Positions 30,720 through 56,867 of a DNA stretch of 64,000 bases are shown here, piece after piece. Every line of letters begins with the position of its first letter. The first letter of the stretch is position 1. Source of the DNA: Squalus acanthias. Its lineage: Eukaryota. The notes under the pieces were generated by a model. That model saw only the letters and a program-made list of their open reading frames with translations, was not told the DNA's origin and did no database searches. Position numbers and translations under genes: made by a program. Location: NCBI GenBank assembly GCA_030390025.1, contig CM059449.1, positions 13,764,001 to 13,828,000 of the forward strand. Reading direction: 5' to 3'.

Positions 30720-31391
30720 TGTCATTTAATCCGTTTTTATTTTACAAGTAGCCCCTTTTTATTTCAAATCAATTCGACTTTTACCTGTAACATTAAAGAA
30801 CTATTTAAAAAATAACATTTACCTATACGAAGCATAAAGCTTAACTAATAGATAGCATCGAAGGCTTAGTTTGAAATATTTATATTTTAAAGCATATTGT
30901 CAAACGGCTTATAATATCTAAAACTTAAAAATTGCGAAACATCCTGCAATATTTAATCATTCTAGAATACATATTACAACAGGAAACTCAGGACATTCAT
31001 TATTTGACATCTGAACATCCCCGAGAGAATGCACCTGCACATGAAGGATGGACATCCTTCTCCCTTGGGACAGCAGGACTCAAAACTGAAAGCTACTGCT
31101 AAATATTTGTACTATGCTTGAAGCGTATGGTGTCCTGGAACAAAATAGTCATAAATACAAGACCGCGATTCGAATTATTATTATTCGTTCGAAAATCTCC
31201 CGAGCAATTAACTTTCACTGTTCGGCTCTGATTTACGGTTAAGGGGAGAACTTTTTAAGTTAAAATCGTCCGGAAATGATTCACAATCCCTCAAACTCCT
31301 TTTGTTTTTCGTCTGGTTTTGAAGGCGCTGGTGTCTCGACCATCTCTGGGTGCATTTTACAATTAAACAAGGAAGGATGACAGCTACTCAT

Positions 31392-31560
31392 TTAATCAAG
31401 ACAGCAACCTCTTACTCTCAGTTTCCAGACACGTTTACTGATTTCAAAAATTGCCTGATTGTTGACTGACTGAGTCTTGGTGCTGTGGGAATATGTATTC
31501 GTTCTGTTATGTTCGTGACAAGCCAGTAGCACTTCGATGGAGCAGCAATTCTGTAACTGC
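31392..31560 (-). CDS. Gene B probable terminal exon (QLQNCCSIEVLL...RVRGCCLD*); 3'UTR if the upstream TAA is real
   Basis: Pyrimidine-rich acceptor ttctcacttctcatgctccaacag|. Open for 55 codons in the phase-2 frame required by the preceding donor. Confidence 0.5.
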
Positions 31561-32012
31561 CTGTTGGAGCATGAGAAGTGAGAATACGATTAATAAATAG
31601 AATTGAACCTAGTCAATTGTTCGTGATTTTCGACTGTGCCGTTTATTGTTGTTGCAATGCATTTAGCCTCATGTAACTAGTATCACTGAACAAGGTGTAA
31701 AGAGGCAGCAAGGAACAGGTAAACGGGGAATTTGGTTAGAAGCAGTTGTTGCTAAACTGAAGTCGTCGGTAATAAAAATTGATAATGAATAATTAAACCA
31801 AGTTCCTTAGTTATATTTTATTTAAAAAAATATTACTATGCAAATTACTCTCAGCGTACACTCAGCTGTCCTGATGTCTGCCTTTAAAACAAATCACTTT
31901 AGCTCATATACCGTGCCCCTGGGAACATTGGTTGAGACATGCATCGTGTGAAGAGGCACCTTGTATTTCTTGGTATATGTTTGATTGCTTGCAGAGTTGT
32001 GCGAGATCGTAC

Positions 32013-32056
32013 CTGTGCAGTTAACTGTAGGTGTCCACGCCTTTCAGCTCCAAGCC
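32013..32056 (-). CDS. Gene B cytoplasmic exon 2 (GLELKGVDTYS*LH), second half of ITAM with in-frame TAA at 32021-32023
   Basis: Follows a 97-nt intron; acceptor ttgttaatag|, donor AG|gtacga. Joined with the previous exon it gives YTGL-x7-YS*L, the exact ITAM spacing. Confidence 0.75.
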
Positions 32057-32153
32057 CTATTAACAATGCAAGACATCCGTATTATTACAAACTCTTGTGT
32101 TAGAAAAAGGCGTATTTTAATTTATTCAGGATATTTTCGTTTATATATTTTAC

Positions 32154-32206
32154 CGTGTATGGAGAATCCACGTCAGTGTGATTGCCAGTTTCATTCTGTG
32201 AGACAC
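32154..32206 (-). CDS. Gene B cytoplasmic exon 1 (VSQNETGNHTDVDSPYT), first half of ITAM
   Basis: Acceptor ttatttcgctacag|, donor ACG|gtaaaa, 53 nt, phase 1-0. Continues the frame of the TM exon. Confidence 0.78.
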
Positions 32207-32358
32207 CTGTAGCGAAATAATGACGCCAAATAACCTTGAATAAATAAATTCCCAAAGAATGTACTTAGAGCAGTAACCTTTATAATTTTACAAGTACATC
32301 TACTTCATAAGGTTTCCGATTCTATGATCAGTCTGTTTCTCTGTCACTCTGTCTGTCT

Positions 32359-32761
32359 NNNNNNNNNNNNNNNNNNNNNNNNNNNNNNNNNNNNNNNNNN
32401 NNNNNNNNNNNNNNNNNNNNNNNNNNNNNNNNNNNNNNNNNNNNNNNNNNNNNNNNNNNNNNNNNNNNNNNNNNNNNNNNNNNNNNNNNNNNNNNNNNNN
32501 NNNNNNNNNNNNNNNNNNNNNNNNNNNNNNNNNNNNNNNNNNNNNNNNNNNNNNNNNNNNNNNNNNNNNNNNNNNNNNNNNNNNNNNNNNNNNNNNNNNN
32601 NNNNNNNNNNNNNNNNNNNNNNNNNNNNNNNNNNNNNNNNNNNNNNNNNNNNNNNNNNNNNNNNNNNNNNNNNNNNNNNNNNNNNNNNNNNNNNNNNNNN
32701 NNNNNNNNNNNNNNNNNNNNNNNNNNNNNNNNNNNNNNNNNNNNNNNNNNNNNNNNNNNNN
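32359..32761. other. Assembly gap (403 N) flanked by TCTG/TATC simple repeats, within the gene B intron between TM and cytoplasmic exons
   Basis: N run. Confidence 0.99.
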
Positions 32762-32899
32762 TCAATCTATCATATATCTATCTATGATACAAGTTAGTGA
32801 GTGTTAACTATACAATATGCCATGACATTTCTCAAAAATGAAGTCTAAACCCAACAATGTGCATCAATGGCCATGTAAACTGCCACTGGCCGACAGCTA

Positions 32900-35110
32900 C
32901 AACAACAATAACAGCTTTTTAGCGACTTTAACGCAGTAAAACGTCCCAAGGCGCTTCACATGAGTGTTATAAAACAAAATTTGACACCGGACCACATAAG
33001 GAAAAATTAGAGCAGATGGAGGCAGGTTTTAATGGGTGTCTTAAAAGGAGGAAAGTGAGGTAGCGAAGCAGAGAGATTTAGGCAGGGAATTCCAGAGCTT
33101 AGGGCCTAGGCAACAGAAGGCACGGCCACCAATGGTTGAGTGATTATAATCAGGGATGCTCAAGAGGGCAGAATTAGAGGAGTGCAGATATCTCGGGGGG
33201 TTGTGGGGCTGAAGGAGATTACAGAGATAGGGAGGGGCAAGGCCATGGAGGGATTTGAAAATAAGGATGAGAATTTTTAAATTGAGGCTTTGCTTAACCG
33301 GGAGTCAATATAGCGAGCACAGGGGTGATGGGTGAACATGACTTGGTGCGAGTTAGGACACGGGCCCCAGAGTTTTGGATGACCTCAAATATACATAGGA
33401 TAGAACGTGGGAGGCCATCCAGGAGTGCATTGCAATAGTCAAGTCTAGAGGTAACAAAGGCATGGATGAGGGTTTCAGCAGTAGACGAGCCGAGGCGGGT
33501 TGGAGTAGAGCAATGTTATGGAGGTGGAAAAAGGCGGTCTTAGTAATGCCGTGGATATGTGGTTGGAAGATCATTTCAGGGTCAAATATAACACCAAGGT
33601 TGCAAACAGTCTAGTTCAGCCTCATGCAGATGCTAGGAAGAGGGATTGATTCGATGGCTAGGGAACAAAGTATGTGGCAGGGATCCAAGGCAATGACTTC
33701 GGTCTTCCCAATATTTATTTAGAGGAAATTACTGCTCATCCAGAACTGGATGTCGGACAAGCAGTCTGACAATTTAGAGACAGTCGAGGTGCAAAAGAAG
33801 TGGTGGTGAGGTAGAGCTGGGTGTTGTCAGCACACATTTGGAAACTGACGCTGTGTTTTCGGATGATGTCGCCGAGGGGCAGCATGTAGATGAGAAATAG
33901 GAGGAGGCCAAGGATAGATCCTTGGGGGACACCCAGAGGTAACGATGCAGGAGCGGGAAGAGAAGCCGTTGTAGGTGATTCTCTGGCTACGATTAGATAG
34001 ATAAGAATGGAACCAGGCGAGTGCAGTCCCACCCAGCTGGACGATGGTGGAGAGGCGTTGGAGGAGGATGGAGTGATTAACCGTATCAAAGGCGGCAGAC
34101 AGGTCAAGAAGGACAGGGAGGGATAGTTTACCTTTGTCACAGACACAAAGGATGTAATTTGTAACTTTGATGAGAGCCGTTTCGGTACTGTGGCAGGGGC
34201 GGAAACCTGATTGGAGGGATTCAAACATGGAGTTGCAGGAAAGATGGGCACAGGTTTGGGAGGTGACAACACGGTCAAGGGCTTTGGAGAGGAAAGGGAG
34301 GTTGGATATGGGGCAGTTATTTGCAAGGACGGATGGGCCAAGGGTTGTTCTTTGGAGGAGGGGGTTGTTGATGGAAGATTTGAAGGAGAGAGGGACAGTA
34401 CCTGAGGAGAGAGAACCGTTAACAATATCAGCTACCATGGGAGCCAGAAAAGGAAGTTGGGTGGTCAGCAGTTTAGTAGGAATAGGGTCAAGAGAGAAGG
34501 AAGTGGGTCTCATAGACAAGATGAGCTCGCATGAGGGGAGATCGGAGAGAAACTGGAGAAATGTACAAGTCAGGGCTAGGGCAGGGGGGAACCTTAGAGG
34601 AAGTTTGGGCCGGTGGGCTAGGGGAAGGAAGTGAAGTGGCAGAGGCAGATGATCAGATGATCTCAATCTGAGAGACAAAGAAGTCCATGAGCTCCTCACA
34701 CTTGTTATTGGAGGTGAGAGTGGAGGAGACAGAGGAGAGGGGTTTAAGAAGACGGTTTGCAGTAGAGAATAGAAGCCAAGTGTTATCTTTGCATTCCAGA
34801 ATGATCTTGGAATAGTGAGCAGTTTTGGCAGATGTGAGCAGGACCCGATAGTGCTTTATGTGGTCCAGCCAGATCTGGCGGTGAATGGCTAAACCAGTTG
34901 TCCGCCATATCTGTTCAAATCTGCATCTCTTGGACTTAAGGGAGCGGAGAGGGTTGTACCGGGGGAACAGCCAGGGTGAGAGTGACTAATGGTTTTAATA
35001 GGGACTAGGGCATGAAAGGTGGTGGTGAGCGTGTGGTTGAGCAGATCAGGAGCTGCAGAAGTGTCATAGTGAATGGAGGGCCAAAGGCTGGAAAGTTGGG
35101 ATTATGTAAG
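32900..35110 (-). mobile_element. L2-clade LINE, 3' ~2.2 kb
   Basis: ORF 33827-34699: LDPIPTKLL...[10 protein letters not shown]...[14 protein letters not shown]...[11 protein letters not shown]. Confidence 0.92.
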
Positions 35111-35289
35111 TACAGTTGTTAGTACGGTTATTTGAAGTAGTAGGTATTGGCAAATACGTGCTTATAGCAACGTGCTAGACGTAGTGGGAAGGTTTACTGG
35201 GTTTGCGATTGTTAGCGTTGTGCTAGGAACATTGTAAGTTTACAATTTCTACAGATATAACAATGGAGGAAAAATGGCACTGGTCGTAA

Positions 35290-35835
35290 CATTTTGTGAC
35301 ATGCAAAATAAATTTAAAAGAACACGAGCATTGCAAATGTTACAACCCTGTTCAACAAAGGGGAGAGGGATAAATCTGGTAATTACAGTCCAGTCAGTCG
35401 AACAACGAGTGGTGGGAAAACTACGAGAGACCATTGCCAAGGACGTAAATAATTCTCACTTGGAGAATATGGGACTGCGAACATGGATTTCTTAAAGGCA
35501 AATCGTGTCTGGCTAACCTGATTGGGTTATTTGTTGAAGTAACAGAGAGGGTTGATGATGGCAGCAGATGTTGTATTTGATAAAGACTTACTCGGAAAAT
35601 AGAAGCACATGGTATTAAAGGGATGGTGGTAACTTGGGTACATCATTGGCTACGGGATTGGAGGCAGAGAATAGAGGTGAAGGGATGTTTTTTTCTGACT
35701 GGAGAGAAGTATGCAGTTGGGACCACCAGAGGTCGTTATTAGGAACACTGCTTTTCTTGTGATATTCAAAGAGCCGGGACAGACACGACGGGCCGTATGG
35801 CTTCCTTCTGATCTGTCAGGTTCTATGATTCTATG
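35290..35835 (+). mobile_element. Degenerate CR1 RT fragments
   Basis: Remnants of ANVTTLFNKG..NYSPV and QHGFLKGKSCLANL; ttctatg tail. Confidence 0.7.
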
Positions 35836-37061
35836 TTTATGATGCCACTACACATAACAATCAGCAATTCTTCCCCCAGATGAAATCTCTCTGTTATGTT
35901 TAAGACTAAGTATTAGCAGCAGTGGGATTCTTCCTGCCTCGTGTCACCTTGACCAGTGAATGTCAGAGGATGATATTCGATATACATTCCACAACAATAA
36001 ATGATCATTTCAACTATTTCTGTCGAAAGTCAAAGAATTGTTGAACCTGATGACCAATGTCAAAAGTTAAAAAAGCAAAAACTAAAAAAAAAATACTCTG
36101 GTTTTAATACACCAATGCACTTTACAATCTTCTCTATAGATTCTAAGATATGCCATTGCAACACTTGAATATTGCATTTTTCAATTTTTGTTTCTTAATC
36201 AGCGAATCATCGAATCATAGAATAGTACAGCATAGAAGGAGCCCATTCGGCCTATCGAGTCTGCGCCGGCTCTTTCGAAGAGCAATCCAGTTAGTCCCAC
36301 TCCCCCCGCTCTTTACCCATACCACTGCAATTTTTTTCTCCTTCAAGTATTTGTCCAATTCCCTTTTGAAGTCTACTATCGAATCTGTATCCACCACCCT
36401 CTCAGGCAGCGCATTCCAAATCCTAACCACTCGTTGCATAAAAAATGTTTTTCCTCATGTCGCTTTTGGTTCTTTTGCCAATCACCTTAAATCTGTCCCC
36501 TCTAGTTATCGACCGTTGGAAACAAATCCTCCTTATGTACTCTATCTGAACCCTTCATGATTTTAAACACATAAATATAGAAACCAAATTCGTTTTATGG
36601 TCTTTCTCATTTCGGTTGTTCTGTTGGCTACAATATACGTGAGTTATACTGTAGAAATGTAATGATTAATCACCTCATTTCTGCTTCAATGGGTATAAAT
36701 TCGACTTGAGGGGCAGTGCAAAACGGGTCTTGAAAGAAAATCGGATGGGGTAAAACGGGCTGCCGATTCACTATCGCTCGTTTGCACGGCCGTTGAAGAG
36801 GAATTGTTCCCAGTTATCCGGGCATTTCATCGAATAGATGGATGCTTTATACCGCGTACAGGCAGGGTTAAAGTTTACAGTTAAACTCGCCTTTTTACAA
36901 TGAATGATTCGTTAAACCGTGCATAATTGCAATGTCAATTATACTTGCAGCTTCATTGTGTATCGGTGTTGGACACGACAATAATTTAAATGAACCATTA
37001 TAGCGTGCATTATCGGACAGTGACCCTTAGATGGCGATATTCTATTTACAAAGATACTTAC

Positions 37062-37181
37062 CATTGCATTTCCATTTCAGTTTGTAGGCTAGTATTATCA
37101 TGATTACGACAGCCAGCAAGGTTAGTACGGTCCACAGTACAGGTGTTATACAAGTCTCCGGGCCCTGGAATGCTGTCCTTC
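37062..37181 (-). CDS. Gene B stalk/transmembrane exon (RTAFQGPETCITPVLWTVLTLLAVVIMIILAYKLKWKCN)
   Basis: Acceptor ttatttcag|, donor G|gtaagt, 120 nt, phase 1-1. About 21 hydrophobic residues followed by a basic stop-transfer. Same length as, and similar to, the exon at 549-668. Confidence 0.88.
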
Positions 37182-37343
37182 CTGAAATAATGAAATGAAA
37201 TCAGTGTTTTTGTTTCTATTCCCAGATTAAAGCTTAGGAACGAAGGTGGCTGTCCTACACAAGGCAGTACAAATATTGTCTAATGAATCTCTGTATAAAC
37301 AGCAAGGTGTAAAAATATTGGCGAACGTGCTTTCATTTTTATG

Positions 37344-38103
37344 GGCCCGAAAATTAAACCTAATACGCGAGAGTACGCACTGTGTACTCTCGCGTCTAAG
37401 ATCCCGAATTGCCGGTTTCCTGCATGCACTGCGCATGCGCGGGAAACCGGCACTTCGTGAATTCAAAAGGGGGCGGTTCCTATTTGAACCGCGTGCGCAC
37501 TACAGGCTGTGCGCACGCAGTGCACTTAGTTATTTTTTCAGCTTTGAACGAGCAGGTAAGTGGTGAAGAGTTTACACACAAAGAAAGCAGGCGTAGGACC
37601 CCCTTTTAACAAGGTAAGTAGTTAATTAAGTGTTATTTTTAATTTTTTTCAACAGGTTTATCTTTTTAGAGACTTTAAAGAAAGGTAAGTTTATTTTTAT
37701 AACTTTTAAAGAGATTTTAAATGTTTTCAAAAATTTAATTTTTTGTTTAAAGTGGTTAATTTATTTAACTATACTTATTTTATTAATGTGATGGCTTTTT
37801 TTAATTTAATTGAGGTTTAGCTGTTCTTTTGGGGGGTGTAGTATTCATAGCTTTGACAGCTCTTGCCGTCAAAACTATGAATGAAAGATGGTGTGCTCCC
37901 ATTGGCTCCACCTGAATCACGTGATCCCAGAGCTCGCACGAACTAATTGCGCCTCTGGGTCACGCAAGCACTGCACGGTTCCAACAGAGAGAGCCTTTGA
38001 AACTAAAGTTCGTGTGGGCCTGGAGCAAAAAGGTAGGCGCGGAGTGCGATATCACGGGGAATCCTTACCCCCGCGGGAACCATCCATGATTAATTTCTGG
38101 GCC
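37344..38103. mobile_element. Same TIR element, copy 2 (inverted relative to copy 1), in the gene B V-TM intron
   Basis: GGCCCGAAAATT...AATTTCTGGGCC; flanks atg/att; body is the reverse complement of copy 1. Confidence 0.88.
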
Positions 38104-38178
38104 ATTAGCACCTTGTAACCAACAGACATGTCTGTTACATTGATACGATGTTTTTTGGAAAGCATTAAATCGACTCCT

Positions 38179-38424
38179 GCCTCATTTGCAGTTTGGTCTC
38201 ATTCCCGTCCCTTTCACACTATCCCCATTCCCTCATTGCGGCGGTTAAAGGGACCTAAGTCTGTCCCTATCCCATCAGAGATTTTGGTAAGCGTTCTCCT
38301 AGTGTCAACCAAGTAAGCGAGTGGCTGCCCCCATCGCGGAGGGAATCGCATTTTAGCCCAACCCTGTCTTCGGCGATGTACACATTCTGCACTTTTCGCT
38401 GGGTTATGACCAGGTCTGTGAACC
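38179..38424 (-). pseudogene. Decayed second VJ-type V exon in the V-TM intron of gene B
   Basis: Phase-1 acceptor catgcag|, then LVITQ...VGLKC...LTW. After an internal deletion and frameshifts it reads KISDGIGTDLGPFNRRNEGMGI and RDGNETKLQMR, aligning with NISDLTEKDSDTYYCRIDLMGV and RDGNGTKLEVR of the intact exon. Donor is dead (C|aggagt). Confidence 0.8.
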
Positions 38425-38640
38425 CTGCATGATCAACCCCCTCCCCAACACTTACAGTGCCCCAGCTGACAGAGATTAGCTCATTTAAAACAGACCCGAA
38501 GTCGAACGGGGGCTGTTCTTGCTCAGTATAACTCGTATACTGCACCCGTATTTGGAAAAATGTTTTTAACATGTTGAATGGTACGCTTCATGAAATTTTG
38601 GCGTGACGGAAAATATGAGAAGAAAAGAGAATAAAAAGGG

Positions 38641-39084
38641 AAAAAAGAAAGACTTGCATTTATATAGCGCTTTTCACGACCACCGGACGTCCCAACGCGC
38701 TTTAAAGCCAATGAAGTACTTATTGAAGTGCAGTCACTGTTGTAATGTAGGAACCGCGGCAGCCAATGTGCGCACAGCAAGCTCCCACAAACAGCAACGT
38801 GATAATGATCAGGTAATCTGCTTTATTTAGCGACGTTTATTGAAGGATAAATATTGACCAGGACACGGGGAGGACTCTCCTGCTCTTCTTCCAAAGAGTG
38901 CCGTGGGTTTTTTTTACGTTCAGCTGAGAGAGCAGACGGGGCCTCGTCCGAAAGACGGCACCTCCGACAGTGCAGCACTCCCTCAGCCTAGATTTTTGTG
39001 CTCATAGTACCTTGGAGTGGGATTTGAATCTACCAACCTTCTAACTCACAGGCGAGAGTGCTACCCACTGAGCCACGGCTGCCA
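38641..39084 (-). mobile_element. Near full-length tRNA-derived DeuSINE (SacSINE1-like) with L2-type 3' tail
   Basis: Head cagccgtggctcagtgggtagcactctcgcctgtgagttagaaggt; central ttgctgtttgtgggagcttgctgtgcg; tail gcgctatataaatgcaagtctttcttt shared with L2 3' ends at about 26500 and 27210. Confidence 0.85.
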
Positions 39085-39570
39085 TGGTAGCTAGGGGGCC
39101 CTGTCAGATATTATATGAACAGATAATATTCTTGCTCTTAGCCAAAAGGCCGAGAAGCCAAATAGTATCACAACATTTAAACCTTACACTTGAGTAAATG
39201 TATGAATTTGTCAGTGGTGTCCACAATGGTGATGTTTAGGCGGTTGTAAATACAGCTATAATGTAGGAAAATGTAAGAATGTACGTTATGAACAGTCCCT
39301 CCACTTTGACTCTCTTGTGGTGAAAACACATGGCGCAATAATAACGCATGCCAGTTAGGTATGAAATTCCTCTGCCCGCTATTTAAAGTCAGACATTTAT
39401 TTATTTACAACAAATGAAATCCGATGTTAAAATTTGCGTTTGGGATTGGCAAACTAATGTGACAATATCTGATTTTGCCTCACCTGCTTTACTTCTGTCA
39501 CACACACACACAACGCTATCTGTGCTGAGAGAGATGCTCCACTAGGCTGCAGTTTGTTGAGTATTATAAA

Positions 39571-40320
39571 CATGATGCGGAGATGCCGGTGTTGGACTGG
39601 GGTGGACAAAAGTGAGAAGTCGCACAACACCAGGTTATAGTCCAACAGTTTTATTTGAAATCACAAGCTTTCGGAGCGACTGCTCCTTCGTCAGGTGAAG
39701 TAAAGCAATACAAAATCGACAAAGCATATATAGATAGAGAACAATGCATGTGTAACTTACAATGGCAGACGTATGAACGGACACCGCACAACAATCGCCA
39801 GGCAGGAGGGTTGCCTCCCAGTCGGGGAACACTTCAGCAGCCAGGGGCATTCAGCCTCGGATATGCGGGTAAGCGTTCTCCAAGGCGGCCTTCGAGATAC
39901 ACGACAGCGCAAAATCATAGAGCAGAAACTGATAGCCAAGTTCCGCACTCATGAGGATGGCCTCAATCGCGATATCGGGTTCATGTCACGATACAGAACG
40001 TGACTTGACATCATGGCCGGTCTTCCCAGGTGTTTTTTTTTTTTAAAAAAAGGCTAACACAAGAACCTACACAGATTGACAGGATATGCAGCCAGCAGGT
40101 GGTTTGACACGTTGGACCCCCTGGGACACATCTCATTGTCTTGGCTATGCTCTTTGATGTAGGAAAGATTTGAATATATTTTGTCTGTGTTTAAATTGTG
40201 AATTCTGGGAGATTCTCTCACTGCTAAACTTACCTGACGAAGGAGCGAACTGCTCCGAAAGCTTGTAAAATTAAATAAATCTGTTGGACTATAACCTGGT
40301 GTTGTGCGACTTCTCATTTT
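39571..40320 (+). mobile_element. Truncated Penelope-like element with GIY-YIG endonuclease C-terminus and inverted terminal repeats
   Basis: ORF 39773-40003 (MNGHRTTI...PVGEHFSSQGHS...EQKLIAKFRTHEDGLNRD) is typical of the PLE GIY-YIG domain. Same terminal repeat as the hairpins; TSD tattataaaca. Confidence 0.88.
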
Positions 40321-40464
40321 TATTATAAACAAGGCATTGCACTGACATGCGGTAAACTAATACTACAACAATTAAGACAGAGAAAACGGAATCACACCAA
40401 TCTTACAACTGTAAAGTTGCAACAAATTTTTATCAATCAAGGACTGTTTGTTCTTGCAACTTAC

Positions 40465-40806
40465 GCCTCACTTCCAATTTGGTGCCATTTCCGTCTCTCG
40501 CTCCTACTCCCATTAAGTCTATCCGGCAGTAATAGGTGTCTGAGTCTTTCTCCGTCAAGTCGGAGATATTAATGAATATTCTGTTGTTGAAAAATGACTC
40601 GCTGTCCGACCTCTCTAGCCGTTCTCCATAAAACGGACTGTCGTCCAGTTTGTACCCATTTGGTTTACCCCGTGTCCATTGAGCTGAGCCGATCAGAGAT
40701 AGGTTTCCTTCAGAAGCCAGGGCACAGTTCAGTGTCACCGACTCACCTTCTGTTCCAGTTATAAAGGGAGGGAACTGGTAAACGGTGGTATTCGCCATCC
40801 TGCCTG
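40465..40806 (-). CDS. NKp30/NCR3-like gene B, germline-joined VJ-type Ig V domain exon
   Basis: Translation TVYQFPPFITGTEGESVTLNC...IGSAQW...YGERL...ISDLTEKDSDTYYCRIDLMGVGARDGNGTKLEVR has the canonical B-strand Cys, C-strand Trp, DxxxYYC and a J-like GNGTxLxV. It resembles human NKp30 (IGSVTW, CRVEVLGLGVGTGNGTRLVV; recalled, not searched). NAGNAG acceptor ttcag/cag (start 40806 or 40803), donor C|gtaagt, phase 1-1. Confidence 0.92.
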
Positions 40807-41189
40807 CTGAACAATGACATTTTAACTTTAAACCGGATAAATACTGCACTCGACACCTGTTTAACGCTGATCAGTTTTTTTTTACCTTAAATGCAATCAG
40901 GCGGTACACATCATATAAATACAGAGATCAAAAGGGAAACTTGAAAATGCTGCAAATACACAAGTGCTTTAAACTAAGGGGCACTTTGTAAATATACAAA
41001 TAATCAGAGTAAGTAATTTGATCCAAATGGATAGACTAAATAAAAAACTAAGTTGAGGATACCAACATTCAAGGAATCCAAATTGCATTAAATAAAAATC
41101 TGGTATACAGAAATAATTAAATAATAATTGGGAGTAAGGGGGATACTAAACTAAAACACATACATATACAACATAAGTAGATAGACGTT

Positions 41190-43512
41190 TAAGTAAGATG
41201 ATTTGAAAGCTGAGACCCGTTGCCTGCAATTCCTGTGCCATGTGGGAATTCCAGGATGCTTGGTGTATCCTGGATAACCATGTGTACAGGAAGTGCCTCC
41301 AGTTGCTCGGTCTTGAGTTCAGGGTTTCTGAGTTTGAGGAGCGGCTGGAGTCAGAGGGCAGGGCACACGGAAGGCTGATAATTTCCTGGCGCGCACGTTC
41401 CAGGAGGTGATCACCCCGCAGCTACAGAGAGCGCAGGGGAATAGTAAGAGGGTGGCCATCGGCAGGATAGGAAGAGGCAGAGAGAGCAGGGATCCTCCGG
41501 GAGTGTGACACTCTCAAACTGGTTATCTGTGCTGAATGTGAGTGCGACGACACCTTGGGGGAGTGCAGTCCGTAGCACATCCACGGCACTGTGGGGCAAA
41601 TGACTGCACAGGTGGGGCACAGCAAAATCGAGAAATGCAGTGGTCATAGGGGATTCGATAGTCAGGGGAATAGACAGGCATTTCTGCAACCGTCTACGTG
41701 AGTCCCGATGGTGTGTTGCCTCCCTGGCGCTTCGAGGGTGCAGAACATTTTGAGGGGGAAGGGCAACAGCTAGATGTTGTGGTCCATGTGGGAACCGATG
41801 GCATAGGAAGGAAAAGCGTTGAGGTCCTGCAGTCAGAGTTTCGGGAGCTCGGGAGGAAACCAAAGAGCAGGTCCTCAAAGGTAGCAATCTCTGGATTACT
41901 CCCAGTGCCACGTGCTAGTGAGTATCGGAATAGTCGGGTAAGATAGGTTAACACGTGTCTGGAGAAATAGAGCAGGAGGGAGGGCTTCAGACTTCTTGGA
42001 CATTGGGACCAGTTCTTGGTGGGGGGGCGCTGTACAAGCTGGAAGGATTGCATCTCAACAGAACTGGCTCCAGTATCCACGTGGGAAGGTTAACTAGTAC
42101 TGTGGGGGAGGGTTTAAACGGAATTTGGCTGGGCGATTGGCACCAGGATGAAGCATTAGAGAGAAGAAACAAGGTGCACAGGGGATAGGAGAGGCAAATA
42201 GCATTAGAGTAAAGAATAGTTCATAAATAGGAGGGATCAGACATGGGGAAAAAGCTAGGCAGACTAAGATGGGTATGGAGTGCATGTGCGTAAGTGCACG
42301 TAACGTGGTAAATAATGTCTATAAAAGGAAATCAGAGGTGCAAAGAGAGAGTATGAGAACAGATTAACGGCTAACATAAAAGGGAACCCAAAAGTCTTTT
42401 ATATACACATAAATAGTAAAAGGGTAGCTAAAGGAAGTGTGGGGCAGATGGACCTTAAAGAAGTTATTCTTGTGGAGGCAGAGGGCAGTGCTGCGGTAGT
42501 AAATGAATACTTTGCAGCTGTCTTCACTAGAGAAGAGGATGGTGCCAAGGTAGCAGTGAATGAGGAGGCAGTAGCGATATTGGATAGGATACAAATAGAT
42601 AAAGAGAAGGTACTTTAAAGGTTGGCAGTCCGCAAGGTAGAAAAGTTACCCGGTCCAGCCGGGATGCATCCCAGGTTGCTGAGGGAAGTAAGGAACTAAA
42701 TTGAGGAGGCTCTGGCCACAATCTTCCAATCCTCTTTAGATATGTGGGAGCGGTGGCAGAGGACTGGAGGATTGTAAATGTTACACCCCTGTTTAAAAAA
42801 AGGGAGAGCGATGAACTCGGCAATTACAGCCAGTCAGCCTATCATCGGTAGTGGGGAAACTTTTAGAGATTTATCAAAATGGGACAAAATAAATTGGCAT
42901 TTGGGAAAGTATGGGCTAATAAATGAAAGTCAACATGGATTTGTTAAAGGCAAATTGTGTTTGACTAACTTAATCGAGTTCGTTCGTGAAGTATCATAGA
43001 GGGTTGATGGGCATAGTTCGGTTGATGTGTATGTGGGCTTTCAGAAGGCATTTGACAAAGTGCAACATAATAGACTTGTTAGCGAAATTAAAACCCATAG
43101 TATTAAAGGGACAGTGGTAACATGGGTACGACATGGGCTAAGGGACAGAAATCATGGAGTAGTGGCGAACGGTATTTTTTCAGACTGGAGGGAAGTATAC
43201 AGTGGTGTTCCCCAGAGGTCGGTATTAGGACCACTGCGATTTTTGATATATATTAATGATCTGGACTTGGGTATACAGGGCATAATTTCAAAGTCTGCAG
43301 ATGACAGGAAACTCGGAAATGTAGTAAACAATGAGGAGGGTAGTAACAGACTTCAGGAGGACATAGACAGACTGGTGAAATGGGCAGACACGTGGCAGAT
43401 GCAATTTAACGCAGATACGTGTGAAGTGATACATTTTGGTAGGGAGAATTAGGAGAGGCAATATGAAGTGAATGGTACAATTTGAATGCGGGTGCAGGGA
43501 CAGAGAGACCTG
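41190..43512 (+). mobile_element. Old, internally deleted CR1 in intron 1 of gene B
   Basis: Esterase remnants (HVGTDG, SGLLPVPRAS) and RT remnant ORF 43027-43452. Confidence 0.85.
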
Positions 43513-44565
43513 CGAAGTCGGGATCGAGTCAGTCCGGAAATCAGTAGTTCACAAAACATTCGCCTAAATGTGATTTAATCGGTCCTGCATTGTTTATGTA
43601 GCTATGTCAGGTCTATAATCTGTCTGAATTTAAGGTGTCTTTTTCGAGCTGCGCTTCAATTACTTTACAATTAAAATACACAAAATTAATCCCAACATAA
43701 GTATTACCAGCAACATACATGTTCTGTGAATTGCTTACAGTTTCTGCAGATGCCTGGACAGTTTTGTTTAATTTCTTGTACCGTTAGAGCGGCTACCTAC
43801 GATAAGTGGCCGGTGCAACTGGCCCAATTTTAAAATATATCAGAGAAAAACAGTTGCAGCCTTTAATAACAATGCAGTAAGAATTCTATCTGTTTGCGAC
43901 ATGGTTGAGTGCATTCAGAAAGATTTTTTAGAAACTGTGAAATGTACGATGAACTCTTCACGAACATGCTTACCAAGTCGCTTACAATTATTGTTCAGTG
44001 AAATTCCTGCTCCACAAATGTAGGAAACCCAATGGAATTAATTCAGATCAATGCCCAGCTATGAGGTGCCAAATAGAAAGAAAGCATAAACTGATCGAAT
44101 ATTATCTTTGGAGAGTACCGAGCATAAAGTTAACTCAAAGCAAACAAGCTAACATCCATTCGAAAGCGACACAAATGATGCAAAAAGAGATAATTAGGAA
44201 TGCTGAAATCCTGATAACTGTCTAAGCATAATGACACTATCACTTCACATTTTGCGAAATAACCTTACCCTTATGTGTTACAGGGAAGTCCCAGTAAGGT
44301 AAGATCGGTTGGCACGTTTGCGACTATATCATCTTAATAGTACATTCACCGGTCATTTCCAAAACTCTAATTGTGTGCAAAGGATTCAATTTACATTTAT
44401 TTCAATATTATATTTAAAAATATATAGTATTGTATAGTAACGACGAGAATAAGTTAACTAGAGCATTACAGAGTAGCGAGTCAGCTAACTTAACCAGAAT
44501 ATCATATAGTACCGACTGGTACAAGTAGAGCATTCTATAATAACGAATAATATAAGCTTACTAAC

Positions 44566-44623
44566 CAGTGCTTAGCGGAAAGAGAATCAGCTGCATAAAA
44601 TGAATTTGTTGAATTAAAACCAT
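44566..44623 (-). CDS. NKp30/NCR3-like gene B, exon 1 (signal peptide MVLIQQIHFMQLILFPLST-G)
   Basis: ATG at 44623, 58 nt, ends in phase 1 at G|gttagt. Clearly paralogous to the 58-nt leader at 8323-8380 (shared FMQLI, terminal TG and upstream cgtgtgcac). Confidence 0.85.
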
Positions 44624-44773: not shown

Positions 44774-45532
44774 GGGCCAAAAATTCGGCCCTACCCGGGT
44801 GAATACACAGTGCGTATTCACCCGTAATGCATCCCGAAGTGCCGATTTCCTGCATGCACTACGCATGCGCGGGGAACCAGAACTTCCGGTCTGGTGAAGG
44901 GGGCGGTTCCTTGGTGAACTGCGTGCGTGGTAGAGGCTGCGCACACGCAGTGAACTTAGATTTTTTTTCAGGTTTCTACGGGAGGGTAAGTAGTGAAGAA
45001 CCTACGCTTTTAAAAAGGATGTGCAGGACCCGTTTTCAACAAGGTAAGTGGTTAATTAAGTATAATTAAAAAAATATTTCAACAGGTTTATCTTTTTTAG
45101 ATACTTTAAAGGAAGGTAAGTTTATTTTTATCACTTTTAAAAAGTATTTTAATTTTTTCAAAAATTTAAATTTTTGTTTAAAGTGGTTAATTTATTTAAC
45201 TATAGTTATTTTATAAATGTGATGGTTTTTTTTAAATTTATTTTAAGTTTAGCTGTTCTTTTGGGGCCGATTTCAATTCACAGATTTGACAGGTCTTCCT
45301 GACAAATCTATGAATGAAAGATGGTCTGCTGCCATTGGCTCTCCATGGCCCACGTGGTCCCAGGGGACGCGTCGCACTAACTACGCCCCTGGGACACGCA
45401 AGCACTGCGCGCCTTGGAGCAGGACCAGGAGCCGAAGTTCCCGTGGGCCCAAAACACAACGGCAGGCGCGGTAGGTAAGTGCGCGCGCAATCCTTACCCC
45501 CGCGGCAAGCCGGAGAGGAGAATTTCTGGGCC
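44774..45532. mobile_element. Same TIR family, more diverged copy 3, 150 bp upstream of the gene B ATG
   Basis: GGGCCAAAAATT...AATTTCTGGGCC, TSD AAT; collinear with copy 2. Confidence 0.85.
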
Positions 45533-46002
45533 AATGAAACTGGTGTTGGCCTTCCTTCAGCGCAGATTTTTAACACTTAACAAGTTGCCTAAAAATTGTA
45601 CGGGCGATGCTATGCTGTAAATTGAGAGCTGGATAACTGCAGAATGCTGCACGCGTCAATAATGACTCGCTATACGGATGTATTTCCTGTTCTATGCTTG
45701 TAATATGGACGCCACACTGCCTCCATGTCTACAGAACTGTTAGACCCGTCAGAATAGCTTCCATCTTGGCCATCACTGAATTAAGGAAACGTAAAAGGCA
45801 AATGGAGAATTGATAATTCAGCTGAGGAACATAGGAACAGCCCCTCGAGCCTGTTCCGCCATTCTCTTTCAAATGTTTTGATAGTTGCTATACTCCGCCC
45901 TGTAATTTTAAATATCCAGTCTAAATAGATTTTTTTTTAAATTTTATTTGAAAACTTGGAGAAGAATGAGACAGTAGAGGAGATGGGACGCTGCGTATAG
46001 TG

Positions 46003-46067
46003 GCCCCAGTGGCCTAATGGATAAGGCACTGGCCTCCTAATTCTGGGTTCGAGTCCCAGCTGGGCTG
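46003..46067 (+). pseudogene. tRNA-Arg(CCT) pseudogene with 8-nt deletion in the anticodon arm/variable loop
   Basis: GCCCCAGTGGCCTAATGGATAAGGCACTGGCCTCCTAA matches vertebrate tRNA-Arg-CCT; GCCAGGGA is missing; B box GGTTCGAGTCCC is intact. Confidence 0.88.
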
Positions 46068-46078
46068 TGAAATTTTAG

Positions 46079-46175
46079 TGTCAGCCATGGCTCAATGGGC
46101 AACACTCTCACCTCTGGGTCAGAAGGCTGTTTGCTGGTCCCACTCCATGAACTTCAGCACAAAAATATCGGCAGC
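46079..46175 (+). mobile_element. 5' fragment of the same SINE directly behind the tRNA pseudogene (also at ~59990-60080 and ~62670-62760)
   Basis: gtcagccatggctcaatgggcaacactctcacctctgggtcagaaggctgt...agcacaaaa, followed by a minus-strand CR1 3' end. Confidence 0.75.
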
Positions 46176-48019
46176 AGATTCTTAGTTTCATAGGAACAGG
46201 AGGAGGCCATTTAGCCCCTCGACCCTCTTCCATCATTCAATGAGATCACGGCTGATCTGCGACTTAACTCCATATACTCGCCTTTGGCCCATATCCCTTA
46301 ACACCTTTGGTTATCAGAAAGCTATCAATCTCCGATTTAAAATTAACAATTGACCCAGCAGCAATTGCCGTTTGCGGAAGAGAGTTCCAAACTTCTACCA
46401 CCCCTTGTCTGTAGAAGTGTTTCCTAATTTTTAGCCCCCTAGCCCTAGACTTCCCAACCAGTGGAAATAGTTTCTCTCTATCTACCCTATCTGTTCTCCT
46501 TAATATCGTGAAAACTTCGATCAGATCACCTTCTAAATTATCGGAAATACAACCCTAATTTGTGTAATCTCTCCTCGTAACTTAACCCTTGAAGCTTACA
46601 TTTTAAATGCAGATTAAATTGTATCTTTCAGATGAAATGATAACACAAACTATGAACAAGCACCGAAAGGATTAAGAATGAGATAGCAAGGTTTATTGAA
46701 AAGCACGGTATATTCTTGGATAAGGGTACAAGGGTGCAACACGTAACATCTTAACAAAAGCTAATGTTGCCATTTAGAAAGGTATGTAATGTGTACTGTA
46801 GAACTGCCTAACATTTGCTGAATTAGTGTTGTTAGTGCCTTGGCAGCGGCGTTGGACTAATAAGAAAGAGCAAGTAGTAGGCTTTATTGATGCCTGTCTT
46901 GGAACTGCCTTTAAGCAATAAAGAGAGTGAATCTCAGGGTCGATATCCAACCTGTTCTAATCTCAACCGAAGCATTTAGGGAGGTCAAATAGACCACTGA
47001 TAAACCTCATGGTTCTCGTGCCCCTGCTTTTCAAAATGAACAACGTCTTCTTGAGCGAAGTAGCGGGGGACGATAGTCAATCACCATTGAAACACTTGAA
47101 ACACAGGAATTGCGAGATGCAAAAAGACTAAGGTCCATCTAATTCGCCTTCTGCCATCCTGGTAGTCGCATGATACAATGATAATGGAGTTTTTGACTAG
47201 TCATAAACATCCATGTCCAGGTATTAGTCTACAACAGACCCAGACATGACACGAGGAAAACCCCGGTGGTGGAGAGATTTGGGAGCCATAGGTCCAAACT
47301 CCAAAGTTATTTTTTTCCTCCCAAGCCTTACACTTACCACACGTCATCTCTCCAATTACTCAAATACTGTATCCAAAATGTAATTTTGTGAAATAAATCT
47401 CTCTAATATGTATTTGCATGAGTCAATACTAACTGCTTTCACCATATCCTAGGGAGTCTGTTCCATAGATTGACCACTCGTTCACTGAAATGTTACTTTT
47501 GAGTTTAACCGCAGGCCATGTCCTCTGGTTCTACTCTGCTGGACAAGATATAATAGCGTGTCATGCTCTAAATTGTCTGGTCCCTTTAGAATCTTAAAAC
47601 CAGCCATCTTATCACCACGCCACCTTTTCTTTTTCAATTTACATCTCGCTCCTCATAATCCAATCTTTCCAGCTCCTCAATCATTCTGGTTGCTCTCTTC
47701 TGCATCCTTTCAATGGCTGCATTATCCTTCCTGCAGTGCTTTTTCATGATGCTTACCTGAGTGCAGCTGCTGTAATGGGATGAAAACGTGGATGGAGAAA
47801 CCACCGTACAGCTGAGCGTAATATAGTGTATAGAACATAACGTACACATTTCTATAAGAACAGAAGAAATAGGAGCAGGAGTCGGCCGTTTGGCCCTTCG
47901 AGCCTCCTCCGCCATTCAATAAGATCATGGCTGCTCTTCTACCTCATCTCTACTTTCCTGCACTATCCCCATGCCCCTTGAGACCCTTAATATTCAAAAA
48001 CCTATCGACCTCTGTCTTG

Positions 48020-51000
48020 CGAGAGTTTGGAGCTACTAAAGCAGCGGGAGCCCAGGAGATTGCGAGACCTCGGCGGTACTTAAAGCAGCGGGAGCCCAGG
48101 AGAGCGCGAGACCTCGGCGGTACTTAAAGCAGTGGGAGCACAGGAGTGAGAGATCGGCGGTACTTAAAACAGTGGGGCCCAGGAGAGCGCGAATCCTCGG
48201 CGGTACTTAAAACAGCGGGGGCCCAGGAGAGCGCGAGACCTCGGCGGTACTTAAAACAGTGGGGGCCCAGGAGAGCGCGAGACCTCGGCGGTAATTAAAA
48301 CAGTGGGGGCCCAGGAGATCGCGAGACCTCGGCGATAATTAAAACAGTGGGGGCCCAGGAGAGCGCGAGACCTCGGCGGTAATTAAAACAGTGGGGGCCC
48401 AGGAGAGCGCGAGACCTCGGCAGTAATTAAAACAGTGGGGGCCCAGGAGAGCGCGAGACCTCGGCGGTAATTAAAACAGCGGGAGCCCAGGAGAGCGCGA
48501 GACCTCGGCGGTAATTAAAACAGCGGGAGCCCAGGAGAGCGCGAGACCTCGGCGGTAATTAAAACAGTGGGGGCCTAGGAGAGTGCGGCTACAACAGACC
48601 GGTGAGTGTGAAGAAGTAAAAAGTAATCGAAGTGTGAGGTCTCCAGAAATCAGGTAAGTGATTGGTTGGTGAGTATTTCTATATTTCTCACTTTTTCTCC
48701 AAACTTGGGCATCTAAATTTAAGTGCCTTGGTGTAGATTAAAAGATATATGTGTTTCAAATTTGAAAACGAATTAATTAATTAATTGAGATGGGAGACAA
48801 GGCAATGTGTTGTTGTTGTTGCATGTGGGAGCTGGTGGACACCATTGAGGTCCAAGGCGACCACCTCTGCAGCAAACGTTGGCTGCTCGTGGAACTTCGG
48901 CTCAGAGTTGATGAGCTGGAGTCCGAGATTCAGATACTGCGACACATTAGGGAGGGGGAGCGTTACCTGGACACTAAGTTCCAGGAGGCAGTCACACCCA
49001 CTAGAGTAATTACTTCCAATTTGGCCCATGGTCAGGGACAGGAGGGTGTGACTACAAGCGAGGCAGGCATTGGGATCCAGGAGGTAGTGATGGAGGAGCC
49101 CTTGGCCTTGTCTAACAGGTCCGAGATTCTTCTCTGTGTGGATGAGGGCAGGGACTGCAGGGAGGATGAGCAATCTGACCACAGCACCGTGGTAGAGGGA
49201 GCCATTCAAGTGGGGGGAGTAAAAAGAAATGTTGTAGTGATAGGGGACAGTATAGTTAGGGGGATAGATACTGTTCTCTGCAGCCGAGAGTGTGAGTCCC
49301 AAAGTGCCAGGATTAAGGACATCTCCTCTGGCTGGAGAGAAACTTGGAGTGGGAGGGGGAGGATCCAGTTGTCATGGTCTACGTATGCACCAATGACATA
49401 GGTAGGAAAAAGAAAAAGGTTCTGCTGAGAGATTATGAGCAGCTAGGGGCTAAATTAAAAAGCAGAACCACAAAGGTAATAATCTCTGGATTACTACCTG
49501 AGCCACGAGCGAATTTGCATAGAGTAAATAAAATCAGAGAAATGAACGAGTGGCTAAGGTAGTAATCCAGAGACTGTTGTGGGAGAAATGGGTTTCGATT
49601 TGTGGGGCACTGGCACCAGTACTGGGATAAGAGGGAGCTGTTCTGTTTGGACGGGCTTCACTTGAACCATGCTGGGGCGAGAGTCCTCGCGAATCGAATA
49701 ACTAGGGCTGTAGAGAGGGCTTCAAACTGAATAGTGGGGGGGTGGGGGGGAGGTGGCGGAGGATCCAGGTGAGCGGGAATTCAAAAAGTCAATGAGAAAT
49801 GAGAAAGCAATAGAGCAGGATAGAGATGGGGGAAATAACAACCAGAGTGTGACAGGAAGGGACAGAATGTTTAAAAATAAGAATGCAAAAGAAAATGGGG
49901 CCAAAACAAGAAGAAATGGTAAAAAGACAAAGTTAAAAGCTCTATATCTGAATGCACGCTGCATTCGTAACACGATAAATGAGTTGACGGCACAACTAGA
50001 TACAAAGGGGTATGATCTGATCGCCATTACAGAGACGTGGTTGCAAGGTGATCAGAGCTGGGAACTGAATATTCCAGGGTATTTGACAATTCAGAAAGGA
50101 TAGACAGAAAGGAAAGGGAGGTGGGGTGGCTTTGTTGGTAAAGGATGGGATCAGTGCAGTGGTGAGAAGTGATATTGGGTCAGAAGATCAAGATGTAGAA
50201 TCGGTTTGGGTGGAGATAAAAATAATGAAAGGAAAAAGTCGCTGGTGGGCATAGTCTACAGGCCCCCGAACAGTAGCAATACTGTTCGACAAAGTATAAA
50301 TCAACTAATAATGGAGGCCTGTAAAAAAGGTGCGGTAATAATCATGGGTGATTTTAATCTCCATATTTATTGAACAAATCAAATTGGCCATGGTAGCCTT
50401 GAGGAGGAGTTCCTAGAGTGCATCCTGTATAGTTTCCTAGAACAGTATGCAATGGAACCAACCAGGGAGCAGGCGATCTTGGATATGGTACTATGTAATG
50501 AGACAGAATTAATAAATGATCTCATAGTAAAGGATCCTCTAGGAAAGATTGATCATAGTATGGTTGAATTTCAAATTCAGTTGGTGGGTGAGAAAGTTGT
50601 ATCTCAAACCAGTGTCCTGATCTTAAACAAAGGCAATTACAATGGCATGAGGGCAGAACTGGCTAAAGTGGACTGGAAAAATAAATTAAAGAGTAAGACA
50701 GTTGCAATGCAGTGGCGGACATTTAAGGAAATATTTCATAACTCTCAACAAAATATATTCCAGTGCGAAAGAAAGATTTTAAGAGAAGGGAACACCATCC
50801 GTGGCTAACTAAGGAAGTAAAGGATGGTATCAAATTGAAAACGAAGGCATACAATGTTGCCAAGATTGGTGGGAGACCAGAGGATTGGGAATTTTTTTTA
50901 AACAAGCAAAGGATGACTAAAAAAATAATAGAGAGAGAAGATGAATTATGAGATTAAACTGGCAAGAAAAATTAAAACAGATAGTAAGAGCAGCTACAGG

Positions 51001-52756
51001 TATATAAAAAGGAAGAGGGTAGCTAAAGTAAACGTTGGTCCCTTAGAGGATGAGACTGGTGAATTAATAATGGGGAACAGGGAAATGGCGGAGACTCTGA
51101 ACAAATATTATGTATCTGTCTTCACGGTAGAAGACACTAACAACATCCCAATAATGGATAATCAAGGTGCCACAGGGTGGGGGGAACTAAAGATAATCAC
51201 TATCACGAAGGAAATAGTACTCAGTAAAATAATGGGACTAAAAGATGACAAGTCCCCTGGACCAGATTGCCTGCATGCCAGGGTCTTAAAAAAAAGTGTC
51301 TGCAGAGACAATGGATGCATTGGTTGCGATATACCAAAATTCCCTGGACTCTGGCGAGGTCCCAGCGGATTGGAAACCCGCAAATGTAACACCCCTATTT
51401 AAGAAAGGAGGGAGACAGAAAGCAGGAAACTATAGACCAGTCAGCCTAACATCTGTCGTTAAGGAAGCAATAGCAGGACATTTGGAAAATCATAATGCAG
51501 TCAAGCAGAGTCAGCATGGTTTTAGGAAAGGGAAATAATGTTTAACAAATTTGTTGGAGTTCTTTGAGGAGGTAACGAGCAGTGTGGACAAAGGTGAACC
51601 AGTGAATGCGGTGTATTTGGATTTCCATAAGGCATTCGATAAGCTGCCACATAAAAGGTTACTGCATAAGAGAAGAGCTCACGGAATTGGGGGTAATATA
51701 TTAGCATGGATAGAGAATTGGCTAACTAACAGAAAGCAGAGAGTCGGGATAAATGGGTCATTTTCTGATTGGCAAACGGTAACTAGTGGGGTGCCATAGA
51801 GATCGGTGCTGGGGCCTCAACTATTTACAATCTAGATTAATGACTTGGATGAAGGGACCGTGTGTAATCTAGCCAAGTTTGCAGATGATACAAAGATGGG
51901 TGGGAAAGCAAGTTGTGCAGAGGACTCAAAGAACCTGCAATAGGATATAGACAGGCTAAGTAAGTGGGCAAACATTTGGCAGATGGAGTATACTGTGGGA
52001 AAGTGCGAGGTTATACACTTTGGCAGGAAAAATAAAAAAGCAAATTATTATTTAAATGGAGAGAGATTACAAAATGCTACAGTTCAGAGGGACCTGGGGG
52101 TCCTTGTACATGAACCACAAAAAGTTAGCATGCAGGTACAGCAAGTAATCAAAAAGGCAAATGGATTGTTGGCCTTTATTTCAAAGGGGTTGAAATATAA
52201 AATCAGGGAAGTCCTGCTACAATTGTACAGGGTATTGGTGAGACCACACCTTGAGTACTGCGTACAGTGTTGGTCTCCTTATTTAAGGAAGGATATTGGA
52301 GGCAGTTCAGAGACGATTCACTCGGTTAATTCCAGAGATGAGGGGGTTGACTTATGAGGAAAGGTTGAGCAGGCTGAGCCTATGCTAATTGGAATTTAGA
52401 AGAATGAGAGGTGATCTTATTGAAACATATAAGATACTGAGGGGGCACGACAAGGTAGGTGCAGAGAGAACTCGGGGGCATAGTTTCAGAATAAAGGGTC
52501 GCCCTTTTAGAACTAAGATGAGGAGGAATCTTAAATCTGTGGAATTCTCTGCCCCAGAGAGCTGTGGAGGCTGGGTTATTAAATATATTTGAGGCGGAGA
52601 TAGACACATTTTTGCAAGATAAGGGAGTGAAGGGTTATGGAGAGCGGGCAGGGAAGTGGCTTTGAGCCTTAGATTCGCCATGATCTTATTGAATGGCGGA
52701 GCAGGCTCGAGGGGCCAAGTGGCCTATTCCAACTCCTATTTCTTATGTTCTTATGT
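48020..52756 (+). mobile_element. Full-length, degenerate CR1 LINE inserted into an older minus-strand CR1 3' end (47855-48019 / 52757-52960)
   Basis: Esterase ORF1 (GDSIVRG), APE and RT fragments, ttcttatg tail; host sequence resumes after the tail. Confidence 0.92.
48030..48590 (+). repeat. ~44-bp CpG-rich tandem repeat, ~13 copies, in the CR1 5'UTR
   Basis: Unit ggcggta(c/a)ttaaaacagtgggggcccaggagagcgcgagacctc. Confidence 0.92.
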
Positions 52757-53589
52757 TGAATATACTCAACGACTGAACCTCCACAGCCCTCTGGGGTAGA
52801 GAATTCCAAAGATTCACCAGCCTCTAAGTAAAGAAATTTCTCCTCATCTTAGTCCTAAATGGTCTAAATTCTGAGACTGTGACCCCTGGTTCTGGACTCC
52901 CCAGCCAGGGGAAACATCCTCCCTGCATCTACCTCTTTAGAAGAATTCTGTATGTTTCATATGGGATAAGCAGTTGCTGAATTAGGTAAACTGATGATAA
53001 TATATATATTTTTTTCCATTTTAGTCTTTAGAGTCACAACAAAACAGCATTTTCTCAACAATTTTCGACTGTGGACACAGCAGCTATGTCATGATGAGTT
53101 CAATTGATTCTTTTGTCCCCTCCAACTCAGGTAGCAAGACAAAAGGCAGTATCTCTACTCCTGCTCCTATCTTCTATGGTTCTATGCTTCAGTGCTTAAA
53201 CGCTTGTTGCTGCCAGAGTCTGCACAGCCATCCCAACAATCTCAGGGGGTGAAACCGGATCCGCAGCCTGTGTTACACCCCGCCGGTTTCTTTTTTATTT
53301 TCTCTTAAAGGGGATGAAACACGGACTGTCCGCTTTGTGCTACGACCCAAGACCAATTTCAGCCCCAGTGTCAACAATCTCCACTTCTGCAAACACAGGA
53401 GGCGGATGTGGATTGTTGTCTTTACCCAGCTGGGTGGTAATATGGCCAAGTGAATCGCCCGGCTGTTGTAGAACTCGCCAGATGAAAATAAGACCAGCTC
53501 CGTAAAGGGGGTGGGTGGCGATCAGATTTCATTTCAGGCGGTGAAGATGAACTTCTATTACGGGGGAGATTAAAATGTACATGTGGATG

Positions 53590-56500: not shown

Positions 56501-56867
56501 GGTGTACAAATTTATGAGTGGCATGGATAGGGCAGATAGAAAGGAACTTTTCCCCTTAGTAGAGGGGTCAATAACCAGGGGACATAGTTTCAAGGTAAGG
56601 GGCAGGAGGTTTACAGGGGATTTGAGGAAAAAACTTTTCACCCAGAGGGTGGTTGGAATCTGGAACTCACTGCCTGAAAGGGTGGTAGAGGCAGGAACCC
56701 TCACAACATTCAAGAAGCATTTAGATGAGCACTTGAAACGCCATAGGTTACAAGGCTACGGACCAAGTGCTGGCAAATGGGATTGGAATAGATAGGGCTT
56801 GATGGCCGGTGCAGACACGATGGGCCGAATGGCCTCTTTCTGTGCTGTATAACTCTATGACTCTATG
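53590..56867 (+). mobile_element. 5'-truncated CR1
   Basis: ORFs 53800-56795 with APE/RT motifs; (ACTCTATG)n tail. Confidence 0.93.

Follow-up and report, generated by a model that had tools for sequence, protein, structure and literature searches.

The window analysed here is a stretch of 64,000 nucleotides (nt) from Squalus acanthias (contig CM059449.1, positions 13,764,001 to 13,828,000). Its main feature is a minus-strand gene for a receptor with a variable-joining (VJ) immunoglobulin (Ig) domain, which is followed by two small exons that resemble the tyrosine-based activation motif of immunoreceptors (ITAM). By sequence comparison, the gene is a member of a tandem shark NCR3 (NKp30) cluster. 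The exon coordinates, splice borders, and phases were recomputed on the minus strand of the window, and translation was done exon by exon (Table 1). A sequence-only reading of this DNA had proposed six exons of 58, 342, 120, 53, 44, and 169 nt, and the recomputed borders and frames returned the same sizes and phases. Each internal exon has AG before it and GT after it, and the phases are 1, 1, 1, 0, and 2. The same reading had described an uncharged transmembrane (TM) segment and a stalk with one cysteine, and both were recovered in the exon translation. The TM segment, VLWTVLTLLAVVIMIILAY, is devoid of D, E, K, and R, and a charged residue (arginine) of the mammalian type for pairing with an adaptor is not found in it. 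The leader, VJ, and stalk/TM exons are well supported, as far as their sequences go, as intact exons of the NCR3 family. The intron from the TM exon to the first ITAM exon is 4.9 kb long. The last of the six proposed exons could not be upheld. It lies after the stop codon, no homology was found with tblastn using homologs, there is no read support, and nothing marks it as an exon.

Table 1. Features of the NCR3-like locus and of its paralog, in positions of the 64-kb window.
Feature	Positions	Strand	Remarks
Leader exon	44623-44566	-	58 nt; begins with ATG; GT donor; leaves in phase 1
VJ exon	40806-40465	-	342 nt; V-set Ig domain; phase 1 in and out; J-like end GNGTKLEV(R) before GT donor
Stalk/TM exon	37181-37062	-	120 nt; phase 1 in and out; one stalk Cys; basic anchor KLKWKCN after TM
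Assembly gap	32359-32761	none	403 N; only N run found; inside intron from TM exon to first ITAM exon
First ITAM half-exon	32206-32154	-	53 nt; enters in phase 1 and leaves in phase 0; ...NHTDVDSPYT
Second ITAM half-exon	32056-32013	-	44 nt; GLELKGVDTYS-stop-LH; GT donor next, at 32012
AATAAA	31822-31817	-	about 200 nt past stop; could serve as poly(A) signal were second ITAM exon the last; pattern match only
Proposed exon 6	31560-31392	-	169 nt; AG acceptor only; downstream of in-frame stop
Paralogous NCR3-like gene	8380-549	-	leader 8380-8324; V about 4326-4015; TM exon 668-549; tail beyond window edge

The exons were searched singly, and the V query was also used as its natural open reading frame (ORF), 40433-40849, which takes in some codons of intron at either end. 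The VJ exon matches Pfam V-set (8.6e-10) and holds a single V-set domain together with a J-like strand (GxGTxLxV). In a word-indexed search, five of 11 candidates were significant. These are shark NCR3-like proteins of Heterodontus, Ginglymostoma, Chiloscyllium punctatum (two proteins), and Mustelus, and the VJ exon is 65-72% identical to them. With those NCR3-like proteins of other species that bear immunoreceptor tyrosine-based inhibitory motifs (ITIMs), the V domain shares 69-72% identity. With a profile built from five close relatives, 15 of 7,367 candidates came out at E <= 1e-5, and these were again shark NCR3-like. An exhaustive search of representative proteins with the V exon gave 226 at E <= 1e-3. 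All of the named close database matches of the V domain are NCR3 or NCR3-like. The other two exons of the receptor head have relatives as well. The leader exon is 63% identical over 19 residues to the leader of a Heptranchias protein (P0025/P0174; E 3.5e-7) and 58% identical to the leader of the paralog in the same window. For the TM exon, the match is with the TM of P0025/P0174/P0006, at 54% identity across 26 residues (E 4.6e-6, about 5e-6).

The solved structures point to the same family. The four best matches of the V exon are all human NKp30 (6.7e-11 to 8.5e-11), and the next is a shark VNAR (1.8e-7). Together with the named database matches, this places the V domain nearer to NCR3 than to CD79, TCR, Ig, or SIRP. 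The sequence-only reading had called the gene a germline-joined VJ receptor of the NCR3/NKp30 family, and the Pfam, relative, profile, and structure matches all bear this out. It had also named one result that would speak against this placement, a grouping of the V domain with CD79. That grouping can be set aside because the best structure matches are human NKp30 and no CD79 chain is among the best 60 solved-structure matches listed. The gene and mammalian NKp30 share a single germline VJ domain, but they differ in the membrane. In human NKp30 the TM contains an arginine and signalling goes by way of CD3zeta/FcRgamma, while the Squalus gene has no charged TM residue.

The relatives in other sharks include Heterodontus francisci XP_067865596-600 and XP_067865589-594, Ginglymostoma cirratum NCR3, and Scyliorhinus canicula LOC119976539/119976781. 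The Squalus gene resembles these in its leader, single VJ, and stalk/TM exons, in the GNGTKLEV strand, in the identity of its V domain, in its homologous leader and TM exons, and in having tandem paralogs. In Heterodontus francisci, XP_067865589-600 (P0023/P0167, P0027, and P0001/P0161-163) are consecutive accessions on one 74-Mb contig. This suggests a tandem NCR3-like cluster made up of two subfamilies of the ITIM type and a single member whose TM contains a lysine.

Downstream of the TM exon, and in phase with it, are the two small exons. The first YxxL is split after Y-x by a phase-0 intron, reading ...TAC ACG/GT and then AG/GGC TTG. The spacing is YxxL-x7-Yxx(L), and there are acidic residues ahead of both tyrosines. 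The first half-exon has a pyrimidine-rich acceptor and a GTAAAA donor. The G+C contents of the two exons are 0.47 and 0.55, that of the 97-nt intron between them is 0.26, and those of the flanks are 0.34-0.38. Nothing similar to the first half-exon was found elsewhere in the 64-kb window. The sequence-only reading had described a pair of the ITAM type that an intron of phase 0 divides after Y-x and that fits the phase of the TM exon, and recomputation confirmed this description. The ITAM chains FcRgamma, DAP12, CD3, and CD79 would share this arrangement with the pair, in the YxxL-x7-Yxx(L) spacing, the acidic residues before both tyrosines, and the phase-0 intron after Y-x. They differ in that no acidic adaptor-type TM exon is near the shark pair and in that its second motif is interrupted. 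The splitting of ITAMs by phase-0 introns is given as a general rule (PMC2832619).

The interruption is an in-frame TAA at 32023-32021, within the second YxxL and only 8 nt upstream of the kept GT donor. The ITAM is thus disabled in the present assembly. The product would end in ...DTYS and would keep a single S-x-Y-x-x-L motif. Since the stop is so close to the donor and AATAAA follows downstream, a truncated protein is plausible from the sequence. It had been claimed that the receptor carries its own ITAM. What stands of this claim is the in-phase ITAM-type pair downstream of the receptor head; the second YxxL does not stand, as the TAA removes it, and the link from the TM exon to the pair is inferred.

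The tails of the annotated relatives are of another kind. The full-length relatives inspected have ITIM-type tails, and one Heterodontus protein (P0027) has a TM lysine and a short tail. Many members of the shark family are also without a charged TM residue. The RefSeq isoforms can indicate how the family tails are built. P0163 differs from P0161 by a frameshift from an internal acceptor, P0165 differs from P0166 likewise, and P0007 and P0164 diverge after ...QPTTQ. From these protein isoforms, rather than from DNA, the first cytoplasmic exon of the family appears to be about 80 nt long, to run from phase 1 to phase 1, and to have an unsplit tyrosine motif. The first ITAM half-exon was considered as a homolog of this family exon, with which it shares an N-H-S/T...Y spacing, and was excluded on account of the length, phases, and unsplit motif of the family exon. 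The two small exons would thus be a different cassette rather than a diverged family tail.

The explanation that is favoured, tentatively and at somewhat less than an even chance, is that this is an NCR3 gene in which the ITIM-type tail exons were swapped for an ITAM cassette that has since been broken by the TAA. It is favoured because the V domain is of the type of the ITIM-bearing relatives, the TM is of the uncharged type of the family, and ITIM exons of the family were not detected downstream. A duplicate of an inhibitory NCR3-like receptor would have kept its ligand-binding V domain and its uncharged TM. Its ITIM-type cytoplasmic exons would then have been exchanged for a two-exon ITAM cassette, as in the CEACAM paired receptors. 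The resulting counterpart would be activating or phagocytic and could do without an adaptor, and the stalk cysteine could permit disulfide-linked dimers. The later TAA would cut the second YxxL, leaving an ITAM that is decaying or that has been switched to a one-motif tail. Both this history and any signalling by the receptor are put forward here as a proposal.

The CEACAM receptors are the closest known parallel. In the CEACAM paired receptors, ITAM exons took the place of ITIM exons (PMC2832619). The pairs consist of inhibitory CEACAM1 and of CEACAM3 and relatives with an ITAM or ITAM-like tail. The shark gene is like them in its uncharged TM and in a V-type domain close to that of inhibitory relatives. 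It would also be like them in bearing an ITAM of its own that a phase-0 intron divides and in its origin by ITIM-to-ITAM exon replacement, which for the shark is proposed (PMC2832619). There are differences as well. The CEACAMs belong to another Ig family and have three or four cassette exons, whereas the shark has two. The shark cassette is broken by a stop, and it is by inference that it is joined to the receptor.

The exchange of tails has to be weighed against a number of observations, which are given in this paragraph and the next two. No relative with such a tail was found. The pattern Y..[LI]-x6-9-Y..[LI] after the predicted TM was present in 0 of the 154 fetched relatives, and an ITAM-type tail in 0 of the 15 proteins of the profile search. 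A looser ITAM expression, allowed anywhere in the sequence, was matched by 10 of the 154 proteins. The looser matches near the C-terminus are in long multi-domain proteins, namely P0039 (Scyliorhinus) and P0061 and P0081 (teleosts). Among the annotated shark members inspected, which have ITIM-type motifs or a TM lysine with a short tail, none has a two-exon ITAM-type tail. Full-text literature searches gave no account of an ITAM-bearing shark NCR3, and their coverage was without the key shark NCR3 papers, so such an account may exist. The pair itself also has features that do not fit. An intact (D/E)xxYxx(L/I)-x6-8-Yxx(L/I) is not present in an open frame, which reads DSPYTGL-x7-YS-stop-L. The first half-exon contains two N-x-T sequons, which are unusual for a cytoplasmic peptide. 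When the two small exons were compared with 177 fetched relatives, only coincidences of 5-7 residues were seen.

It is possible that the likeness to an ITAM arose by chance and that the two small exons are non-coding sequence. A loose form of the pattern, Y-x/GT, an intron of 60-400 nt, and AG/x-(L/I)-x6-8-Y-x-x-(L/I) with one stop allowed, turned up in 60 first-order Markov simulations at a rate of about 1.9 per 64-kb window when both strands are counted. Taken alone, the motif is thus weak as evidence. A still looser scan, run earlier on the real window, had also found one further second-half site, in a plus-strand ORF of a long interspersed nuclear element (LINE). The stop within the second motif, the lack of a homolog among the 177 fetched proteins, and the lack of read support in four mapped runs are likewise as expected of non-coding sequence. 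However, a strict form, in which both exons must have pyrimidine-rich acceptors and acidic residues must stand ahead of both tyrosines, had a match in only five of 300 simulated windows. The real window has exactly one such match, at the pair 32206-32013. The strict criteria were set after the data had been seen, so the true significance is between the loose and the strict figures. In addition, the pair is on the right strand, within the 28.7 kb that separate the receptor from the next gene and in which a tail should lie, and in the one fitting phase of three. The contrast in G+C between its exons and the intron is also marked. A chance resemblance is very unlikely on these grounds, and the pair is very probably a real relic of ITAM-type coding sequence.

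A real pair need not belong to this receptor. It could come from a different gene, for a small adaptor or for some other receptor, with upstream exons that lie in the gap, were destroyed by LINEs, or were lost. The NCR3-like gene would then end elsewhere or be a tail-less or decoy form. The gap and LINE reverse-transcriptase fragments occupy most of the 4.9-kb interval, and the gap could hide exons or a misjoin. It is wholly intronic and so leaves the reading frame untouched, but continuity across it is in question. No listed piece from four mapped sequencing runs bridges both of its sides (32359-32761). On its low side the gap is bordered by a weak tandem repeat of 8 nt, and by eye both flanks are simple sequence of a GATA/GACA-like kind. 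Such flanks are what is expected of an unresolved microsatellite, not of a scaffold join. Five listed sequencing runs contained V-exon words; none was recorded as RNA, and the best share of the sampled V-exon words was 0.21. Four runs were mapped on 31380-37250. Besides the TM exon, depth was seen only over LINE and short interspersed nuclear element (SINE) repeats, and it was zero over the ITAM exons (31968-32163). The TM exon was covered by only one of the four runs, which is DNA-like and about 6% divergent. The mapped runs neither support nor refute the splicing. A splice from the TM exon to the pair is presumed here from the sequence.

Other points suit a different gene as well. No annotated NCR3-like protein inspected has an ITAM-type tail, a nonsense codon would fit a decaying relic, and phase compatibility alone is expected by chance in one case of three. 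Against this, no leader-like exon and no acid-bearing adaptor-type TM exon were found in the readable DNA of 37061-32207. The NCR3-like gene would also be left without the tail of its family. Such a tail was not found downstream of 37062 up to the next gene, either by tblastn with five homologs or by a motif scan. Finally, the pair shares the strand of the receptor exons, and its order and phase are right. A separate gene as the source of the pair is, with these points on both sides, rather unlikely.

The stop codon allows one more explanation. The ITAM could be intact in the animal or in the species. The TAA would then be an error of base calling or a single null allele, and the product would be a working NKp30-like receptor that signals by itself. 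TAA is one base away from several sense codons, and the remaining exons and splice sites are all intact. The GT donor is kept past the stop, as if the frame once continued. However, the stop is in the assembly sequence, and none of the four mapped runs covers 31968-32163. An intact ITAM is quite unlikely for this gene. The swapped and since broken tail is kept as the favoured, if tentative, explanation.

The rest of the window holds a second gene of the same kind. The V domain of this paralog is 45% identical to that of the first gene, and its Pfam V-set match is only 0.0046. Its TM exon, at 120 nt, has the same size as that of the first gene. The TM and V of the paralog resemble Pristiophorus P0006 and Heptranchias P0174, which both have ITIM-type tails. 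Apart from the two NCR3-like genes, the window contains LINE fragments, and no other cellular gene was recognised. The LINE reverse-transcriptase/endonuclease fragments are dense at 8400-31300 and 45000-64000 on both strands (Pfam RVT_1, 1e-10 to 1e-28). The only Rfam matches are two tRNA-like sequences, at 46003-46067 (+) and 62587-62659 (+).

Several small elements were seen in the V-TM intron of the first gene. A J-like fragment, RDGNETKLQMR, is at 38212-38180 (-), and its 11-residue tblastn match has an E of 0.85. An ORF at 38267-38572 (-) has no Pfam match. A tRNA-derived, SINE-like stretch was recognised by eye at about 39000-39090 (-). An element of about 90 nt forms an inverted pair at about 39610-39700 and 40230-40330, another hairpin-like copy is outside the intron, close to the window start, at about 290-440, and the element contains CTGACGA...GAAA-like strings. 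No Rfam family was over threshold for this inverted element.

A wider claim can be made for the family, although it is unlikely. Sharks would have, or would recently have had, NKp30-family VJ receptors with an intrinsic ITAM of the CD3/FcRgamma type in one polypeptide, and the TAA would be a null allele or an error. If true, this would put on a single chain an antigen-receptor-like molecule that does not rearrange and has its signalling built in, and its family would be one linked to the proto-major histocompatibility complex. Inhibitory and activating forms would be paired by exon replacement and not by a charged TM. In a bolder version the truncated form is itself functional, and a dimer formed through the stalk cysteine would show two single S-x-Y-x-x-L motifs and be hemITAM- or ITIM-like. 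Receptors that have their own ITAM are already known, and so are paired receptors that came from tail swapping. An NKp30-family member with its own ITAM was not among the annotated shark proteins examined. In its present state, the locus holds an intact receptor head beside a disabled ITAM cassette, and it is a lead rather than a result.

NKp30 is one of the few natural killer cell receptors that are conserved across jawed vertebrates, and its VJ domain often enters discussions of how antigen receptors arose. Should a member in sharks carry its own ITAM, the family would have explored signalling that is independent of adaptors, and the wiring of early VJ receptors would become testable. It would also mean that tail-exon swapping formed inhibitory and activating pairs in this family independently of the mammalian CEACAMs.

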